In this document: positions 27,965 through 36,622 of the stretch, piece after piece
Layout of the letters: every line of letters begins with the position of its first letter
Numbering within the stretch: the first letter of the stretch is position 1
Assembly (NCBI GenBank): GCA_004764695.1
Contig: SMSO01000034.1
Location: forward strand, 3,534,001-3,598,000
Direction of reading: 5' to 3'
From: Schizochytrium sp. TIO01
Taxonomy: Eukaryota > Protista > Bigyra: Labyrinthulomycetes
DNA length: 64,000 bases
Position numbers and translations under genes: made by a program
The notes under the pieces: generated by a model
Told to the model about the DNA's origin: nothing
The model's input: only the letters and a program-made list of their open reading frames with translations
Database searches by the model: none

Positions 27965-30618
27965 GGCACCACAAGCTCGAAGCTTAGCTGCCTGTCAGCA
28001 CAAATTTTCTTTAGTGAACCCAACTTTGACTACTTAAGGAGAGATCGCAATGCAGCAGGTTTCCGAATTGGATTCCGCTGCAATGCAAGGGTTTTGCGAT
28101 TGTTGAAATGGTTTTGATTCTCGATCAGGACCACTATGGTTACTAAGTAGAAGGTAAAAGTAAAAACTATTAGGTTCGAGTTCCTTTTTTGTTTTGTTTT
28201 CTCTTCCAGCATTTTGTAATGATGATCAAAGTTCAAAGACCTGGAATAAACAAGAAGATCTAGGAAAAGCGAGTCATTGCGGTTTGTTGCACTGAGGATT
28301 GGGCACCTCCCTAGCGGGAATTGTAATTTTAGAAGCTGGAGCTAAGTGAGAAGTGCAAGCATGCGCTTACTATGAAGTAGGTAAGGAGGTTCCTACGTAC
28401 CTTCTCACCAAAAAGGTTCTCCGCTCCCCTGGCAAGGTATTTAACCGGATTATCTTTCTCGGAGGAATAGAAAATCGATACAATGCGACTTTAACAAAGT
28501 TGGAGCGACGAATCACGAATGTATATCACTACGGATGAACTTTAAATGGCCATTTCCTGAGAAGTAAAACAATACCTTGGGGCCGATTTAACGAAGATGG
28601 ACAGCAAATACATATCTTGGTAAGCACTTTGCCTCGAATGCTGCTATGTCTGGTGTCCAAGAAGAACGTTTCTCGCCAGCGTGGAGTTTAAAAGCGGACC
28701 ACGCAGGAGCTGGTAGGATTCACCGATGTGGGCCCGTGCGTGCTGTTTTTGTTTGAGAGGTGTTCTTGTTTGAGCCTTGGAGAATGTATCTGAAATCTCC
28801 ATCGATGGAATTCGGAATTCACTACTGCTGTTGACTTGAATGACCAAATAGTTCTCAGAGTTATATGGTAGAAAAGGCACACAAACACAGAAATTTCATA
28901 CGCATATGCAGTGACCTTCTTGTTGCTCTACGGGACTTGGGATGTTGGTCTCTTAAAATGTACTTGGGAACCTAGGCTGCAAGGTTGTGAGATTGTCTGA
29001 TTACCCCTCTGTCCCACAAAAAAAAATGTGGTGTAGGTACAACCATTACTCGAGTGAAATTGAGTGTTGTTATCAAGCTCACCTTTTCCAATCCGTTATT
29101 AGGCTACCTGTTAGGTAACCATAAATGAGTTTTTGGTTCGAGGCTGCCGTCTTCTACGGAGTTCTCTTGTAGAAAGTTATGAAGGTTTTTTTTAATATAA
29201 AGTGAAGCAAAGATTATATAATAGCCAACATGTCAATCATACTAACATAATTATTCCGCAGAATCCCAAAAGTTGTGTTCTTTTCCCCTTTGATTGGCTC
29301 AAGCTGGCATCCACATTGCCAAGTTGCTGGATGTCCCAAGATTCCCCGAACGACTGCGTAGAATGAATGCTTCAGTGTGGGCACATAATTCCCCTGCTAT
29401 ATCAGCCACCCTAAAACTCGGAACCCCGAATCAAGGTCTCCTCGACCTCCTCATTACTGCCTGCTAATTTTGTGAAAAGTTTTTTAGGAGTCTTTCGTTT
29501 AACCTTGGTTTTTCTCGATGGTTTCCAAATTATTCGCTCTTGCGCGTCTTGAAGCAGCTTTCTGACAAGCAGTCGCCGTGAGGTGAATTATAAAATGCTT
29601 TTCTTTCAAGACCGGTAGTGCTGATTGTGTTGGTCTACTTGCTGCCCAGTAGAGCCCACTTCGAGGGCCCCTTATTAACTCATTGTGCTAGCAGAAAGGG
29701 ATCTTTTAAAAGCAAGTGGGTCTAAGCAAAGATTGCAGTAGGCGGTAGCGACCTTCACGAATCGATTGAAGAAGCAAATTGATAGACCAGGAAGACAGCA
29801 GTAGTGAGGTGGTGTAGCATAGAGGTGCGCCAGTAATGGGGTTGGATAGCAAACCTGAATATATTGCTCAGGTGCAATGTAAGAAAGTATTTATTACACT
29901 ACTAATAGGATTATATGGGTTCCTACCACTATAAAATTTGTTTCAGTCTGTGTGGATCTTGCAATGGCCACGAAACTATCATGCCCATGCCATGAAGGGT
30001 GAATCCATCTCAGCTATGGCCACAAGAATACAACAAGTACATCCATTTCTTGACTTAAAATTGAAACACTTATTGAGATGCAATCAGACGAGAGCGCAAG
30101 TCATCCATTTAGTTGGCATTTATCCTTCAATAGTGCCATAATCAAGCTCTACACGAATAAATGCCAGCTTAATTTGTCAATCTATTTGTCACCAATAATT
30201 AAAACCTCGTCGCTCTTATATCACCATGAGATGTAGGTGCAGATTATCCACACAAACAAAGCCTGCAAGAACAAAAAAAATAAACTTGGCGAGTCAAAAT
30301 AATTGCCAGAGAATCGCTGAGCTGCATCCATGCATGGTACCTTCATCCGCTAAGGAAGCAACGACGTTTACTATGACTTTAAGAAACCCAAACCGACAAT
30401 AGGGGAAGGACGAAATAAAGTAACAGAGAATGAGCATGAATATGCAGAAAAGGAGGATAAAAGAAAGAGAAAAAGACATTAAGAAAAAATAAGAAAGAAG
30501 TTGGAAAAAGAAAGAGTTTGCAATCACTTTCGATTAATTCATCAACCCATCGATTGCCAAAGCACGGCCTCCGCAGTCCTTCGTGCCTCTCTTCAAGAGA
30601 GGGGGGGGGCTAGAGCTT

Positions 30619-33600
30619 ATGTTGTGGCATTCTTCGGACTCCGCGGAGGAGGTCTCTTCTGCAGGCGCCTTTCTAGGCGAGCAGGAGGTGGCTGAGGGCC
30701 CTCGCAGACGTGGCAGCTTGCCACAAGACCTCGGCAGCCTACACTCAGAAACCTCTCAAGAAGATAGCTTTGAAAGCGGAATTGGACTTCACTACGCAGG
30801 TAGCCGAGAGCTCTCTTTAGGCTCCTCAATACACCACATTCAGCACTCTCAACACAGCTCCAATGCAAGTAACAGCCACATCAGCGCCAATCTCAGCAAT
30901 AATATCAACAACAACAACAATGGTAGCGGGAATAGCAATGGCAACTGCTCGAGTCACCATTCATTTCATGCTCATAAGAATACAAGCCATCCAAGCCCAT
31001 GTATGAGTACGAGCTGCAGCGCATGTGGAGATAATAATATTGGAGGAGGCAATTCCCATACACATGGGAACGCTGTTTCAAGCGCATTGAGGAATTTATC
31101 ATTCGTGAGCGCTGCACAATGCGGTTCGCAAAGTCGTGGAGGTCAATCACACGCTTCAGAGACATCTGCTGACGAAAGGGTCCGCTTTAAACGCAAAACT
31201 TCTGTGTATTTAGAGAATAATACTATGGCACTCTTCGAAGAAGAAGAAAACGCCGATCACCCGGTCGATGGACCGTGTGGGTGTTTAGAAGAGACATTTA
31301 GTAGACCAGCAGCGATGGTTCTGGTATCTATATGGTTTGTTCTCAGCTGTATATTCTACATTAAACTTCGCAGGTCCATGAAGGGCTTCAGTGGCGGTGG
31401 CGACGTGGTGGCGCAAACTGGTGTCCACTTCCTTACAAGCGGCATTATAATGCTTCTTCATTCCACAATCATGTGGACAACAGGCCAACAAAAACACGAG
31501 GCCCTCTCGAAATTACTCAAAGAGACACCTGCGCCTGTATGGCTGGTGCTTGGTTTTGCCCACTTTGTGGGCCATGCACTCTTAATATGCGGCTTATCCG
31601 TTCTGACAGTGTCAAATATGCAACTTGCGCGACTTATTGAACCGGCTATTGCTGTTGCTATGGCGGGCCTTGGCTGGGTTCCACAGAGTCATGCACCTCT
31701 AACATCAACCCAAATGGCCTTCGGTGCTGTTCTTGCAGGTGGTGGTTTGCTGGCTGCACTCCCCTCGCACGAAGTATTTTCTGGGGTTGTTCTCATTTAT
31801 TTGTCTAGCTTCTTATTGCAGTGGCGCGGGCATGCTGTCCGCAGGATGATGCAGACAGTACATGTCGACGCTTGTTTTGTGGCGTTTGGTATTACTGCTG
31901 TGGTTGGTTCTTTCATTGCCATGTTGGTTCTCCTTCTCCTCTACACCACTGGGCTTTCTGTTTTTTCGGGGTCTGTTAATCTTGAAACTGGCCTTTATTA
32001 TTTCGGAGCTAATGCGGTAAGCCTTCTCCTTACACAAGTTTATCACCATGGTGCCCACGAGGGATTGAAGCTCTTGAAGCGAGTTCTCACTGCTGCAATT
32101 GCTGCTTATATTCAATATGAACATATCACTCAAAGTCAATGGATCGGTGTTGCTGTGGTGGCGATCGGCTGGGTCGGCCTTGATATGGATCGTCAAATCG
32201 CAAACTCAAGGCGAAGTAGAATTCTTGGAGTGTTAGTTGCTCTTCTTTTGTTGGCCGTCATATCTCTCGGTGGAAGTTTACAAGAACAGTATGGCCCAGA
32301 AACCTGGCTACAACAGCGCTCTACCAAGCCATTTGCACCGGGAGTCAGCGAAGATGGGCGAACTGAAGAAGCTCGTCCCTTTTGCGAAATCTATGAGGAT
32401 CAGCTTTACAGTATTTGGGCGTATCCGTATGGCCCTGATCCCAGTGTAACGCGTCGCTGTCCTACTGAAGTTGTGTATTGTGCATATACTGAGTGCTTAA
32501 ATCATTTTGCAGGTGCGCGGCGACTCAACCTTGCATCTTTGGCTAAGGGAACACCTTACGAAGATTTCGTACGTTACCATATGTGGTATAAAATAAAACA
32601 CAAGAGGCAATTCGTACATCATGTCCAGTCCGTTGCAATGCTTTCTCTGCTTTTGAAAAAACCTGGAATTTGCGTACGTATTATTGGTGATATGCGATGG
32701 CACTGTCATGAAGACCGGAACTGGCCTTCTCTCGACTATGATCCAGAGAGTGGCGTGACCCTGCCTCACTTTATGCCCCATCGACCTGTGATTTTGCATG
32801 ATGAATTTACTTCATTTAGTTATGTTTCACGCATGAAGCGTGTAGTTGGTGTGGACCTTGGTGATGAACTTCAAGCATTCGCTGGACTCTCGTTTGTCCC
32901 TTATCTCACCCATTTCACCGATCGAGATCAAGGACTACCCAACTCGCATGGCCACATCTTTATGAATTCATGGTTTGGACCCTCCGTTCGCTGGCCACCC
33001 AGTAACGCTCTTAATCCTGTAATGGTTTCGTTACATACCAGTCCAAAGTTTCGACGCACCTTGCAGGCACAAAATTTTACTTACCTTCGACGATACAACA
33101 CAATATACGGCGCGATTGGCGCGCGTGAACATGCAACCCTAGATTTCCTTCGCGCAAACGGAGTTGATGCATATTTCTCCGGCTGCTTTTCAACCATTGT
33201 GGATATTACTAAAGATGCTACGACCAGGTTACGGAACAAAACATTCTTGGTGGATGTGGCACGTCTTGAGCTTGTGCCTAAAGAAATTCGTGACGTTGCA
33301 GAACGTCGGACAGTGCTTCCTCAGACGCGTGGGCTGCAAGACGAGGAATCTCTTCATTTAAATGCTTTTGAACTCTTACGCACTTTCGCAACAGAAGCTA
33401 GGCTTGTAGTAACCTCAAGAATTCATGTTGGCCTTGCTGCAATGTCACAAGGTGTTCCTGTTGTGTTTCTCAAGCCGCCCCCTGGGGCTGCCGCAACAAC
33501 TACGGATGTAACAGGTGCCACAGGGGCCGGTATGAATGAGGTAATGACTTATTTCCATGTGCTGAGTAAGGATCAGCCTCTTCGGAAAAACTTCAATTGG

Positions 33601-34683
33601 AGTGATCCTCTCCCCAATCCAGGCAACCACATTGTTGACCGCCACCGTGCCAGTTTTTGGAGAGTTGTCTCGAAGCGTTCTCATTTCTATGCTGACACTG
33701 CACATCTCTTTGGTGTAGTTCCTCTGGTGCGTCTCGGCCAAGGTCAAAAGTATGCCAACAAAGTGTCTCATCACACTTTTCACTTAGCCTTGCCGCATGC
33801 TGACGCCGTAACAGCCTCAACCATCCAGCTTGCTGAAAGTGTTTTTAGACATCACCCAAACGCGAAATTAGTTGTTCACTGCAATGATTTTGGTGTGCGG
33901 CACACTGACCTCGTTAACTTTGCCTTGGTGGGCTATGATGTTGTTGTTGAACCATTTGATCTCGTTCAGCAATTACGCCAGTTTCACCTAGATCATAAGC
34001 TCGTAAGACGCTTTGTCAAGCACATCAAAACGAACCCAGATGACATTTCCATTCTGCCTGTTCTTGCTTTGTGGCTTCAAGGTGGAGTGTTTTTACGTGA
34101 ACATGACTCTTTGATTACAAATACAATCCCTCATTCCATATCTGCTGCATATCAACCAGATTACAGCATCCTTATGTTCCCCAAGAATTCGCCGATTTTA
34201 CTTCGTGTGGCTGAACTCTTTCTACGGAATCCTCAATTGGCTTTGGATAATGCCCTCAACCAGGCCATCAATGAGATCTCAGTGATCACTAGTCCTCACC
34301 ATGAGGCGCCCTTCGACAGACCTCTTCCTCTTCAACAAACATTGCAGGTTGGGGTGGAAGATAACGATTTCGAAAACCCCGAAAATAGCTTACAACAAAG
34401 TGAAGAAAAAGAACAAAATGAAATTGTGGAATTCGATGACACTATTCTGCAGCAGGGATCTCCCGTCGCGCCTCCTGCCGATGCTCCGACTTTTGTATCT
34501 GCACCAACTTCTTCAGGCACTGTCTTACCTGAAGGTACGAAGGACCATTCAAGAAACTTTCAAATTATACGACTTTCTGAGGGCGAGTATTCAACTGGAC
34601 CTTGTGTCAATTCTACGATAGTATGTACTAATCTCTTTGAGACTTCGTGTCTGTTTTGCGACTCTCCGTGGGGCCCAATGTAG
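30619..34683 (+). CDS. Fusion protein: triose-phosphate/PEP translocator-family (DMT) transporter + extra TM + GT32-like domain + polysaccharide pyruvyltransferase + second GT32-like domain
   Basis: TPT-like motifs IWFVLSCIFYIK, AHFVGH, VSNMQLARLIEP, YYFGANAVS, LLKRV. Pyruvyltransferase motifs DLGDELQ, IFMNSWF, VSLH, IGARE..T...L...GVDAYFSGC, LVVTSRIH..LAAMSQGVPVVF. GT32-like AESVFRHHPNAKLVVH and LALWLQGGVFL. Single uninterrupted ORF; first ATG at 30619. Confidence 0.82.
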   Translation: MLWHSSDSAEEVSSAGAFLGEQEVAEGPRRRGSLPQDLGSLHSETSQEDSFESGIGLHYAGSRELSLGSSIHHIQHSQHSSNASNSHISANLSNNINNNNNGSGNSNGNCSSHHSFHAHKNTSHPSPCMSTSCSACGDNNIGGGNSHTHGNAVSSALRNLSFVSAAQCGSQSRGGQSHASETSADERVRFKRKTSVYLENNTMALFEEEENADHPVDGPCGCLEETFSRPAAMVLVSIWFVLSCIFYIKLRRSMKGFSGGGDVVAQTGVHFLTSGIIMLLHSTIMWTTGQQKHEALSKLLKETPAPVWLVLGFAHFVGHALLICGLSVLTVSNMQLARLIEPAIAVAMAGLGWVPQSHAPLTSTQMAFGAVLAGGGLLAALPSHEVFSGVVLIYLSSFLLQWRGHAVRRMMQTVHVDACFVAFGITAVVGSFIAMLVLLLLYTTGLSVFSGSVNLETGLYYFGANAVSLLLTQVYHHGAHEGLKLLKRVLTAAIAAYIQYEHITQSQWIGVAVVAIGWVGLDMDRQIANSRRSRILGVLVALLLLAVISLGGSLQEQYGPETWLQQRSTKPFAPGVSEDGRTEEARPFCEIYEDQLYSIWAYPYGPDPSVTRRCPTEVVYCAYTECLNHFAGARRLNLASLAKGTPYEDFVRYHMWYKIKHKRQFVHHVQSVAMLSLLLKKPGICVRIIGDMRWHCHEDRNWPSLDYDPESGVTLPHFMPHRPVILHDEFTSFSYVSRMKRVVGVDLGDELQAFAGLSFVPYLTHFTDRDQGLPNSHGHIFMNSWFGPSVRWPPSNALNPVMVSLHTSPKFRRTLQAQNFTYLRRYNTIYGAIGAREHATLDFLRANGVDAYFSGCFSTIVDITKDATTRLRNKTFLVDVARLELVPKEIRDVAERRTVLPQTRGLQDEESLHLNAFELLRTFATEARLVVTSRIHVGLAAMSQGVPVVFLKPPPGAAATTTDVTGATGAGMNEVMTYFHVLSKDQPLRKNFNWSDPLPNPGNHIVDRHRASFWRVVSKRSHFYADTAHLFGVVPLVRLGQGQKYANKVSHHTFHLALPHADAVTASTIQLAESVFRHHPNAKLVVHCNDFGVRHTDLVNFALVGYDVVVEPFDLVQQLRQFHLDHKLVRRFVKHIKTNPDDISILPVLALWLQGGVFLREHDSLITNTIPHSISAAYQPDYSILMFPKNSPILLRVAELFLRNPQLALDNALNQAINEISVITSPHHEAPFDRPLPLQQTLQVGVEDNDFENPENSLQQSEEKEQNEIVEFDDTILQQGSPVAPPADAPTFVSAPTSSGTVLPEGTKDHSRNFQIIRLSEGEYSTGPCVNSTIVCTNLFETSCLFCDSPWGPM

Positions 34684-35155
34684 TTTCATACTACAAAACA
34701 TCTGCTACAGATCATCACTTTCCCCCCTCATTTGATAATACTATGTACTGCACAATTTTATTCTGTTAAAACAAGAAAAACACCATAGCCACCTTTCTTT
34801 AAATTTTGCACGTGTACGTATCTAATCTATTTTGTCCAGGTGCGCGCAGACAGACTTCCGTAAGCCTTCAGCTTCTGATTCGTAAAATTAAAAGAACTGA
34901 AACTATTTTATAAGTAAAAAGATGTTTGTTTTTTTTTAAAATTAAAAAATTAAGAAATAAAAGCCATAGCATACATGCTACTAGTAGAAGGTACTATGCA
35001 ACACACTAGCGGTAATTTAAAAAAATCAAAAAGAGCAAACCTGAACAACCTGCACATATAAAAACGCATTTAGAATCGGGAAACACGCTGTCGCCCACGG
35101 AGGTTAAACCCGCTTTATCGAAACTTCGTGGCAAACACATTAATCCTCCGATACC

Positions 35156-36622
35156 ATGTCGGCCCTGAGTGCCGCGCGGAAACACATGACGGCCGCTAAG
35201 GGCGCCCTAAAGACTTCGCTCTTCAAATGGAGTCCAGACTACATCTCGGCAGCTCATCTTTACGAAAAAGCTGCTGTTTCCTTCAAAGCTGCAGGTGACC
35301 CCGAGCAAGCGGGAGATGCGTACAAGTGTGCTGCAGAAGCCAATTCCAAAGGTGACAATGAAAATGCGGCCGCCAAGTGCTGGGAATCCGCTGCAGAAAT
35401 GCACCTGAGCATCTTCCGAAACCAATCTAAAGGTATCGAAGGTGGTCTTCAGCAAGCCAGAACAGCTGCAGACTACTACAGCCAAGCTGTGATGATTTAC
35501 CGCGAATCAGGAGCAGCTAGCCAGGCGTCCACAGCTCTTAGCAAAAAGGGGCAGGTTCTTGCAGACGCCGCGGCAACGCTTCCAGAGGCACACAAGAAGC
35601 GCGACGCACTTCTCACGGAGGCACTCGAGTGCCTCATGACTTCTTGCGAAATTCTCGAAATTGCCAACAAGCTTGTTTTTAGCAAGGACACTTACCGCAA
35701 CACTTTTAACCTAGTTGTACGTATGCGACGCTGGTCAGATGCCCTCCAGGTCCTTAATAAGATGATACCAGTGTACAAGGAGCTCAACCAGACAGCTGGA
35801 GGATTCAAGCTGCGCTTGAGCGCAGTAATTATTCAACTTCAAAGGAATGATCTTACAGCAGCTAAAGCTTCTTTTCGAGAGGGTTTTGATGATACAGCGT
35901 ACCTCAGCTCTGACGAGTGTGCGGCTGCTGAAGATTTGCTGCGGGCATGGGAGGACATGGACGAAGATGCTGTGCGGAAGGTAATTGCCCGACCTGTATT
36001 TCAATTCTTAGAACGCGAAGTTGCGCTGGTGGCGCGTGACCTAAGCCCATTTAACAGCTCTGCTCAACCACGAGATGTCCCATTGGCAAGTAGTGCTACC
36101 ACTGGCTCCGGGGCAGGAGCAGGTGCTCGCGCATCTCTTGCTACAGCAAGTTATGCTCAACCGGGACCAGCCGCTATGGATGCGAAGATTGTCACTTCGT
36201 CTAAATCTGACGCAATGCCAGCTAAGACCACAGCTGCATCTACCCCAACAGGTGAGGCTGATGCGGTTTCGGATGCTAATCGTCAAAGCTTGTTCGCCCG
36301 GAAGCCACAGCTGGCACCAGCGCCACCGGCTCCGGTTATAGCTGAGGCAACTCCCATTTCGAGCGAGTTTGAGGCAGAACAGATGCCCATGGCTGCACCG
36401 GAACCTACGCCAGCACCCAAGACGGCATCACTGACGAGCACTGCTGCGCTGGACCACAGCGTGGAAGCTGCCACGTCGCAGCTTGCCTCCTCTTCACTGT
36501 CCGATAAATCTATGCCCTCAGACTCTGCTGCAGGGGAACCAACTGCTCACTCACAAAGCACATCGCTTCCGCATGATGCAAATGATGATGACGAGGACGC
36601 AGATCTTGACTTTCTGCGTTAA
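35156..36622 (+). CDS. NAPG: Gamma-soluble NSF attachment protein (gamma-SNAP) with a long low-complexity C-terminal extension
   Basis: The N-terminus LKTSLFKWSPDYISAAHLYEKAAVSFK matches the gamma-SNAP 'KW.PDY..AA..Y.KAA..FK' motif; TPR-like helices; acidic terminus DDDEDADLDFLR. Confidence 0.88.
   Translation: MSALSAARKHMTAAKGALKTSLFKWSPDYISAAHLYEKAAVSFKAAGDPEQAGDAYKCAAEANSKGDNENAAAKCWESAAEMHLSIFRNQSKGIEGGLQQARTAADYYSQAVMIYRESGAASQASTALSKKGQVLADAAATLPEAHKKRDALLTEALECLMTSCEILEIANKLVFSKDTYRNTFNLVVRMRRWSDALQVLNKMIPVYKELNQTAGGFKLRLSAVIIQLQRNDLTAAKASFREGFDDTAYLSSDECAAAEDLLRAWEDMDEDAVRKVIARPVFQFLEREVALVARDLSPFNSSAQPRDVPLASSATTGSGAGAGARASLATASYAQPGPAAMDAKIVTSSKSDAMPAKTTAASTPTGEADAVSDANRQSLFARKPQLAPAPPAPVIAEATPISSEFEAEQMPMAAPEPTPAPKTASLTSTAALDHSVEAATSQLASSSLSDKSMPSDSAAGEPTAHSQSTSLPHDANDDDEDADLDFLR

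Follow-up and report, generated by a model that had tools for sequence, protein, structure and literature searches.

A thraustochytrid gene that joins a translocator-like carrier and a pyruvyltransferase-like domain in one chain, a candidate for self-supplied glycan pyruvylation

A gene of Schizochytrium sp. TIO01, located within a 64,000-nucleotide stretch (the window) of contig SMSO01000034.1 (assembly GCA_004764695.1, positions 3,534,001 to 3,598,000 of the forward strand), encodes a transporter domain and a pyruvyltransferase-like domain. One chain and one transcript-like contig join the two halves, and the fusion architecture is real. Its parts, and the pathway to which they belong, are known; what is undescribed is their union in a single chain, which this genome has twice. 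We propose, with about an even chance of being right, that the product is a Golgi-type membrane protein in which a carrier of the TPT type, an eleventh helix and a lumenal pyruvyltransferase-like module make pyruvate ketals from phosphoenolpyruvate (PEP) that the protein imports itself. A first-pass annotation, made from the letters of the window and their open reading frames (ORFs), had suggested such a system, and its reading is partly supported: the architecture, the extra helix, the PS_pyruv_trans domain and the single transcript-like contig stand, whereas it had missed the loss of a phosphate-binding tyrosine (the Tyr339 equivalent, below), a Cys-rich stretch and a possible GT-A-like domain.

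The reading frame is unbroken from 30583 to 34683 on the plus strand (1366 amino acids counted from a mechanical GTG) and stop-free over 4.1 kb, and the Met at 30619 is where the alignments to both orthologs, from Hondaea and the protein P0002, begin. The single ORF of the first-pass annotation (30619-34683) was confirmed, with 1354 amino acids and one joint-free contig in each of four runs. When contigs from these runs were compared over 29500-35400, each run gave one joint-free, unspliced contig covering the gene (30563-34733, 30553-34856, 30601-34936 and 30611-34879) and none on 29500-30484, and a gap separates the gene's contig from the next gene's own contig, which starts at ~35069-35102. 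The contigs have the look of transcript assemblies because their ends coincide with the gene borders; the RNA nature of the runs is not on record, and the transcript reading is drawn from these contig limits. Strain differences amount to 12-26 positions across runs and are for the most part synonymous (synonymous to non-synonymous 17:6 in one run and 12:1 in the other runs), and the sole indel is an in-frame 3-nt deletion at 30906 in a poly-Asn tract, in run X16. Since orthologs of the same layout exist at 61% and 36% identity and the strain variants are rich in synonymous changes, the layout is far beyond chance. That two adjacent genes have been read as one is very improbable, given the stop-free frame, the joint-free single contigs that span the ORF in four studies, and the same layout in Hondaea GBG27728.1 and in the JGI protein P0002.

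The closest public homologue is GBG27728.1 of Hondaea fermentalgiana (1257 amino acids, 61% identity over 99% of the queried region), which was automatically named after its pyruvyltransferase domain only, and the second ortholog is P0002 (1095 amino acids, 36% identity, same layout). These were the only two relatives among 1.84 billion representative proteins. Word-index searches returned just the Hondaea protein and the own copy of a paralog encoded on contig C30 of the same genome, and a metagenome scan with the family profile found no further member. A TPT fusion was absent from all 80 of the best Pvg1-like metagenome loci, the set used for this check. The first-pass annotation had called the architecture uncharacterised, and a literature search likewise found no description of TPT joined to a pyruvyltransferase.

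Several lines of comparison support the placement of the transmembrane (TM) region as a divergent member of the TPT/nucleotide-sugar transporter branch of the DMT superfamily, with a plastidic phosphate translocator as its nearest solved structure. A profile of the three family members (the window protein, GBG27728.1 and P0002) aligned by hhalign with the genome's own TPT paralogs at 97.5% probability over 272 columns. The TPT hidden Markov model (HMM) scored the three members at 17-31 bits, where local shuffles (300 each) reached at most ~6, and P0002 matched PF03151 at 19.9 bits (E=5e-4) over the full-length profile. A BLASTP alignment with the C30 paralog was collinear over 324 residues (E=7e-4), and language-model features pointed to EamA/TPT/nucleotide-sugar transporters (0.96); searches of PDB sequences with the TM piece and with the three-member profile gave no match. 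An AlphaFold2 (AF2) model, built from a 15-row alignment that held TPT proteins, has ten membrane helices within aa 227-525 (nt ~31297-32193) and an eleventh at aa 530-558, with a predicted local confidence (pLDDT) of 70-90 over aa ~231-526; a single-sequence AF2 model of the TM piece was set aside as unusable (pLDDT 47). The best Foldseek match to the model was the triose-phosphate/phosphate translocator of the red alga Galdieria (GsTPT2, 5y78; E=5.5e-7), and VIA-align superposed 287 of 305 residues on it (Z 26.4, root-mean-square deviation 3.5). The nucleotide transporter SLC35B1, the CMP-sialic acid transporter and Vrg4 gave Z scores of 25.6, 19.3 and 14.4. The region of about ten helices with a TPT pattern, which the first-pass annotation had picked out by eye, was thus recovered in the model, its quoted motifs in register with GsTPT2 and its likeness to TPT folds returned by both structural comparisons.

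The genome (64 Mb in 37 contigs, with the window on the contig labelled C33) contains a second fusion. A PF04230 scan found two pyruvyltransferase domains only, that of the window gene and one on contig C30, and a TPT scan showed that the C30 domain shares one 835-aa open frame with a TPT domain. The C30 paralog exceeds the Pfam cut-off of each family (73 bits for TPT and 56 bits, across the whole profile, for PS_pyruv_trans), matches Pvg1 (5ax7, E=4e-14) and the translocator (5y78, E=1e-6) in the PDB, and keeps Pvg1 D106, R217 and R337 in its enzyme half; by Pfam it has no glycosyltransferase domain. An independent Logan assembly predicts the same C30-type fusion (P0003). That one genome also encodes this second, canonical fusion of TPT with a Pvg1-like enzyme lends credibility to a functional pairing of transporter and enzyme. 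A maximum likelihood tree of the TPT-family domains encoded in this genome pairs the C30 carrier domain with the window family as its sister (support 92/86); the stand-alone paralog L004 branches next (support 85/88), and the UAA- and UDP-Gal-type paralogs fall apart from the fused carriers. L004 is the nearest unfused relative of both fused carriers; its sole PDB relative is 5y78 (E=3.5e-15), and Arg stands in for both Lys204 and Lys362 (RSAEP, FRR). The organism that carries it is plastid-free. Because the tree places them beside L004, both fused carriers belong to the translocator-like branch of the family. A single ancestral fusion is plausible from these sequences, and is put forward tentatively because the branches are long.

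The residues of the substrate site tell a mixed story. GsTPT2 binds phosphate through Lys204, Tyr339, Lys362 and Arg363, mutation of any of which cripples inorganic phosphate (Pi) exchange, and its His185 binds the C1 carboxylate of the C3 substrate (10.1101/169169). Register against GsTPT2 was established by an ungapped count from the Lys204 equivalent together with MAFFT and hhalign alignments. H319 corresponds to His185, is invariant in the three family members and is in ungapped register with the Lys204 equivalent, which is R338 in the window protein and Lys in both orthologs. The first-pass matches of AHFVGH to the translocator motif and of QLARLIEP to its counterpart, with Lys changed to Arg, are borne out, with H315 and H319 and then R338, E341 and P342 in register. 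Its pairing of YYFGANAVS with FYHLYNQVS holds as to register, but A464 occupies the Tyr339 position in the window protein, where Hondaea has Ala and P0002 Phe. Similarly, the Lys-Arg pair at 32077-32082 that it called conserved is correctly placed (K487/R488, at Lys362/Arg363) and is present as KR in P0002, but is QC in Hondaea; K484, one turn before this pair, is invariant. At the Phe263 position the window protein has L400 and the C30 paralog F, and the plant PPT has Asn. The four-residue phosphate site of plastidic phosphate translocators (pPTs) is therefore incomplete, reading R, A, K, R in the window protein, K, A, Q, C in Hondaea and K, F, K, R in P0002. With a translocator signature that is recognisable yet incomplete, the window protein is not a canonical pPT, and PEP/Pi exchange by its DMT domain is suggested by the logic of the fusion and by this partial signature.

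Whether an enzyme fused to such a carrier could meet lumenal glycans depends on the helix that follows it. In family members of solved structure, both termini lie on the inner side, which is equivalent to the cytosol (10.1101/169169), and since the termini of a ten-helix carrier would face the cytosol as in these relatives, an eleventh helix would place the enzyme in the lumen. The RRSR motif and additional hydrophobic helix of the first-pass annotation are both there, and an extra helix follows the DMT domain in four of four fusion proteins (window, Hondaea, P0002 and C30 paralog). A hand count over the AF2 helices gave ten Lys and Arg residues on the predicted cytosolic loops and four on the opposite side, most of these four lying in the basic cap that the family conserves behind helix 1. 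Conserved Cys residues and a conserved N-x-S/T site (N993) lie downstream of helix 11. A lumenal enzyme is thus predicted from the model, and the charge bias, RRSR, the Cys residues and N993 fit it. Conservation within the family peaks in the Cys-rich stretch (aa 561-740), which is 52% identical to its P0002 counterpart where the carrier and enzyme parts reach 33%; the stretch gave no Pfam, PDB or fold match. AF2 confidence falls below pLDDT 50 over lumenal aa ~560-1050, which take in this stretch and the N-lobe of the enzyme.

The enzyme half scores above the 25.3-bit PS_pyruv_trans gathering threshold (31.1 bits for the whole protein; 33.9 and 34.9 bits on pieces of it). The domain placed by the first-pass annotation at ~32850-33475 is confirmed by this score, although only in the C-terminal half of the profile: PF04230 positions 123-276 are matched and 1-122 are not, so that of the two lobes of this GT-B-like domain type the match covers the C-terminal one only. 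Against 79 Pvg1-like sequences, hhalign aligned 34 columns and confidently set TSRIH...GVPVVFL on TDRLH...GIPHVVL. PEP is bound by R337 and H339 in Pvg1 (PMC4872226) and by R306 and H308 in CsaB (PMC10435577), and this Arg-x-His is kept as R934 and H936, the TSRIH of the window protein being aligned to SDRLH/TDRLH by hhalign. A second PEP-binding Arg is R217 in Pvg1 and R148 in CsaB. R882 in FLVDVARLEL resembles by eye that of Pvg1 VLILARLDHE, at 26 against 28 residues from a PD-like motif; the low-confidence extension of the hhalign alignment sets it at another position. No Lys stands at the position of Pvg1 K361 (CsaB K328), and K952 lies nearby.

Downstream of the enzyme, a GT-A-like domain is possible at aa ~1036-1225, and is given here as a lead. 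ESM features linked this part to SseK/NleB, Gly_transf_sug and TcdA_TcdB (0.93), and Foldseek matched it to YeGT (8ovt; probability 0.99, E 0.028; VIA-align Z 5.1); Pfam gave no match to it. Membership in GT32 was considered and rejected, hhalign against the genome's PF04488 paralogs giving a non-significant 0.8%. At the DxD position the window protein has REH, and the other members RNH or V-GD.

Several results weigh against a PEP/Pi exchanger coupled to a pyruvyltransferase. Of the two Pfam families expected from the first-pass annotation, PF04230 was found (31.1-34.9 bits against 25.3), but for PF03151 the window protein stays below the 30-bit gathering threshold and has no match, and its locus is not among the matches of a genome scan. 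The sole Pfam transporter match is the sub-threshold EamA (17 bits, E 0.0075). In structure, the nucleotide transporter SLC35B1 ties with the translocator (Z 25.6 against 26.4), and the fold match is not independent of the profile match because the AF2 alignment contained TPT proteins. At the substrate site, none of the three members keeps the phosphate-binding Tyr339 equivalent, Gln and Cys replace Lys362 and Arg363 in Hondaea, and the C30 paralog has Gly at the Arg363 position and Asn at the His185 position. In the enzyme, the N-terminal (acceptor) half could not be aligned by hhalign or HMM to Pvg1-like sequences (3, then 79) or to Pfam profiles. The Pvg1 D106 position falls on P788 in the weak hhalign extension or on D749/E750 in the register read by eye. 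In P0002 the two PEP-binding Arg positions are taken by Q and K; the R148Q and R148K forms of CsaB are inactive (PMC10435577), and since both PEP-binding Arg residues are replaced, P0002 at least may be inactive.

Such differences bear on a reading that we consider comparatively unlikely, namely that the window gene is a degenerate paralog whose transporter, enzyme or both are inactive, and which leaves pyruvylation to the C30 fusion and itself acts as a regulator, a scaffold or a factor that binds glycans. The branch of the window family is very long, key residues differ from member to member (with the Tyr339 equivalent gone from all three, QC in Hondaea and Q/K in P0002), the Pfam score is marginal in the Hondaea ortholog (22 bits for PS_pyruv_trans) and absent in P0002, and the most conserved part, at 52% against 33%, is the uncharacterised Cys-rich stretch. 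Yet an invariant set of polar residues lies within the helices (Q266, H270, H315, H319, E341, R403, H415, E456, H480, E481 and K484), and the window protein itself keeps R338, K487, R488, R882, R934 and H936. The DMT part carries five synonymous variants and one non-synonymous in strain X16, and the gene appears to be expressed, with comparable contig depths in the four runs, whose RNA nature is inferred.

Also unlikely, in our estimate, is that the DMT domain carries another solute, a nucleotide sugar or nucleotide, for the GT-A-like domain or for nearby Golgi glycosyltransferases, with the C30 paralog, L004 or some other carrier bringing PEP to the lumen. PF03151 includes many nucleotide-sugar transporters, and SLC35B1 and the CMP-sialic acid transporter are structurally close (Z 25.6 and 19.3). 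The lost Tyr339 equivalent, the lost KR pair of Hondaea and the possible GT-A-like domain would all suit such a solute, as would a UDP-galactose-transporter-like ORF just upstream of a Pvg1-like gene at a metagenome locus (L054). Against this, the nearest paralogs are the fused C30 domain and the translocator-like L004 and not the UAA or Nuc_sug_transp types, H319, R338 and K487/R488 fit the translocator signature, the GT-A-like domain has neither a DxD nor a significant family match, and the C30 fusion keeps its transporter though it lacks a glycosyltransferase domain.

The self-supplying carrier and enzyme that we propose would work as follows. The protein would reside in the secretory pathway, most likely in the Golgi, with the ten-helix carrier's termini in the cytosol, so that helix 11 would carry the enzyme to the lumen. 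The carrier would import PEP and export the phosphate freed by the transferase, and the enzyme would add pyruvate ketals to glycans made in the Golgi, a plausible target being the sulfated, galactose-rich scales of the wall. Thraustochytrid walls consist of Golgi-made scales of a sulfated galactose/xylose polysaccharide (PMC11642839), and in S. pombe Pet1p and Pet2p supply the Golgi enzyme Pvg1p with PEP (PMC4872226, PMC6801904). The yeast system has the same two proposed activities, a Golgi PEP carrier and a lumenal PEP-dependent ketal pyruvyltransferase, the comparison with Pet1/Pet2 being one of role. It differs in that its proteins are separate and Pvg1p, of type II, has just one anchor, whereas in the protist protein an eleventh helix joins carrier and enzyme in one chain, and beyond the R-x-H no kinship of the window enzyme half to the Pvg1 subtype was detectable. 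To our knowledge, the eukaryotic pyruvylation pathway has been worked out in fission yeast only, where carrier and enzyme are separate. A broader version, which we hold to be somewhat short of an even call, is that every pyruvyltransferase of thraustochytrids is joined to a PEP/phosphate exchanger of its own, and that the window protein is a diverged three-module form (carrier, pyruvyltransferase and GT-A-like domain) acting on galactose-rich wall scales.

Comparison with other known systems sharpens the picture. With the plastidic phosphate translocators (GsTPT2, 5y78/5y79; plant TPT/PPT) the carrier shares the ten-helix DMT fold and the equivalents of His185, Lys204 (as Arg) and Lys362/Arg363; they are its best structural match and the sole TPT-type PDB sequence relative of the paralogs. 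It differs from them in the absence of Tyr339, in Leu for Phe263, in ~800 extra residues and in its plastid-free host. Like the bacterial PF04230 enzymes CsaB and WcaK, the window protein exceeds the gathering score and keeps the R-x-H, but it is eukaryotic, membrane-tethered and multi-domain, with an unrecognisable N-terminal half. Golgi nucleotide-sugar transporters (Vrg4, SLC35) share the fold, the expected cytosolic termini and the logic of the compartment; Vrg4 (Z 14.4) and the CMP-sialic acid transporter have lower structural scores, and the window signature is translocator-like.

If the broader version is correct, this would be the first natural case of a Golgi donor carrier and its transferase in one chain, and catalysis at the membrane would proceed in fixed stoichiometry with donor import and by-product export. 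As a natural fusion, the gene gives Rosetta-stone evidence for cooperation between a DMT carrier of translocator type and a pyruvyltransferase. Pyruvate ketals lend glycans a negative charge like that of sialic acid, and the proposal predicts a new anionic modification in the walls or exopolymers of thraustochytrids, which are grown industrially for docosahexaenoic acid. It would also offer a compact two-in-one module for glyco-engineering, allowing pyruvylation in a Golgi without PEP import, and a handle on how Golgi carriers of the TPT/nucleotide-sugar transporter branch choose phosphorylated C3 acids over nucleotide sugars.

Table 1. Coordinates of the fusion gene, its predicted parts and the two paralogs (window positions unless another locus is given).
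Feature	Position	Strand	Remarks
Coding sequence	30619-34683	+	1354 aa plus stop, intron-free, earliest ATG 30619
Transcript-like unit	30553-34936	+	outermost limits; single contigs, four runs from four studies
Low-complexity, disordered N-terminus, aa 1-221, presumed cytosolic	30619-31281	+	26% identity to Hondaea, gap-rich
Basic Ser motif GPRRRGSxPQxL, aa 27-38	30697-30732	+	GPRRRGS(L/V)PQ(D/E)L kept in Hondaea
Basic Ser motif R(F/L)KRKxSV(Y/F), aa 190-198	31186-31212	+	kept in both relatives
Predicted 10-helix DMT-fold transporter domain, TPT type, aa 222-526	31282-32196	+	hhalign, HMM, AF2, Foldseek, VIA-align
TM3-TM4 signature H315, H319, R338, E341-P342	31561-31644	+	GsTPT2 alignment
TM9 basic residues K484, K487-R488	32068-32082	+	GsTPT2 Lys362-Arg363 = K487-R488
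RRSR (aa 531-534), then 11th hydrophobic helix (aa 535-553)	32209-32277	+	RRSR 32209-32220, helix 32221-32277; extra helix also in relatives
Cys-rich stretch, aa 561-740	32299-32838	+	six invariant Cys, no known family
Pyruvyltransferase-like domain, aa ~741-1035	32839-33723	+	Pfam part aa 830-951 (33106-33471)
PEP-binding motif R934-x-H936	33418-33426	+	Pvg1 R337/H339 by hhalign
R882, likely Pvg1 R217 equivalent	33262-33264	+	pattern and spacing by eye
Possible GT-A-like domain, GT32/toxin-glycosyltransferase type, aa ~1036-1225	33724-34293	+	leads only, without DxD
Variable acidic/low-complexity tail	34294-34680	+	ends in conserved SC(L/I)FC
C30 fusion, 828 aa	G000:C30:1445150-1447636 = L016:4151-6637 (coding to 6634)	+	TPT, extra helix and Pvg1-like enzyme
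L004, stand-alone TPT paralog	G000:C3:332609-333538	-	167 bits to PF03151

The two basic Ser motifs of the N-terminal region may serve, on the cytosolic side, as signals for phosphorylation or sorting. At the other end of the protein, SC(L/I)FC (C1344 and C1347; 34648-34659) is invariant in all three members within a tail that is otherwise unconserved. The downstream neighbour, an ORF at 35156-36622, is covered by a separate contig (35069-36622) at 2-5 times the depth. Its contig begins ~130-330 nt past the end of that of the fusion gene, so the intergenic spacer is very short.

Among the metagenome loci, L054:1749-4790 (contig Ga0265780_10003431, fungal-looking) has its UDP-galactose-transporter-like ORF ~690 nt upstream of the Pvg1-like ORF and on the same strand; the two are unfused neighbours, and the Pvg1-like product is type II. 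At six bacterial-looking loci (L072, L078, L079, L083, L085 and L087) an EamA/DMT-like ORF adjoins a pyruvyltransferase gene on the opposite strand, and these ORFs score 24-31 bits to the TPT HMM.

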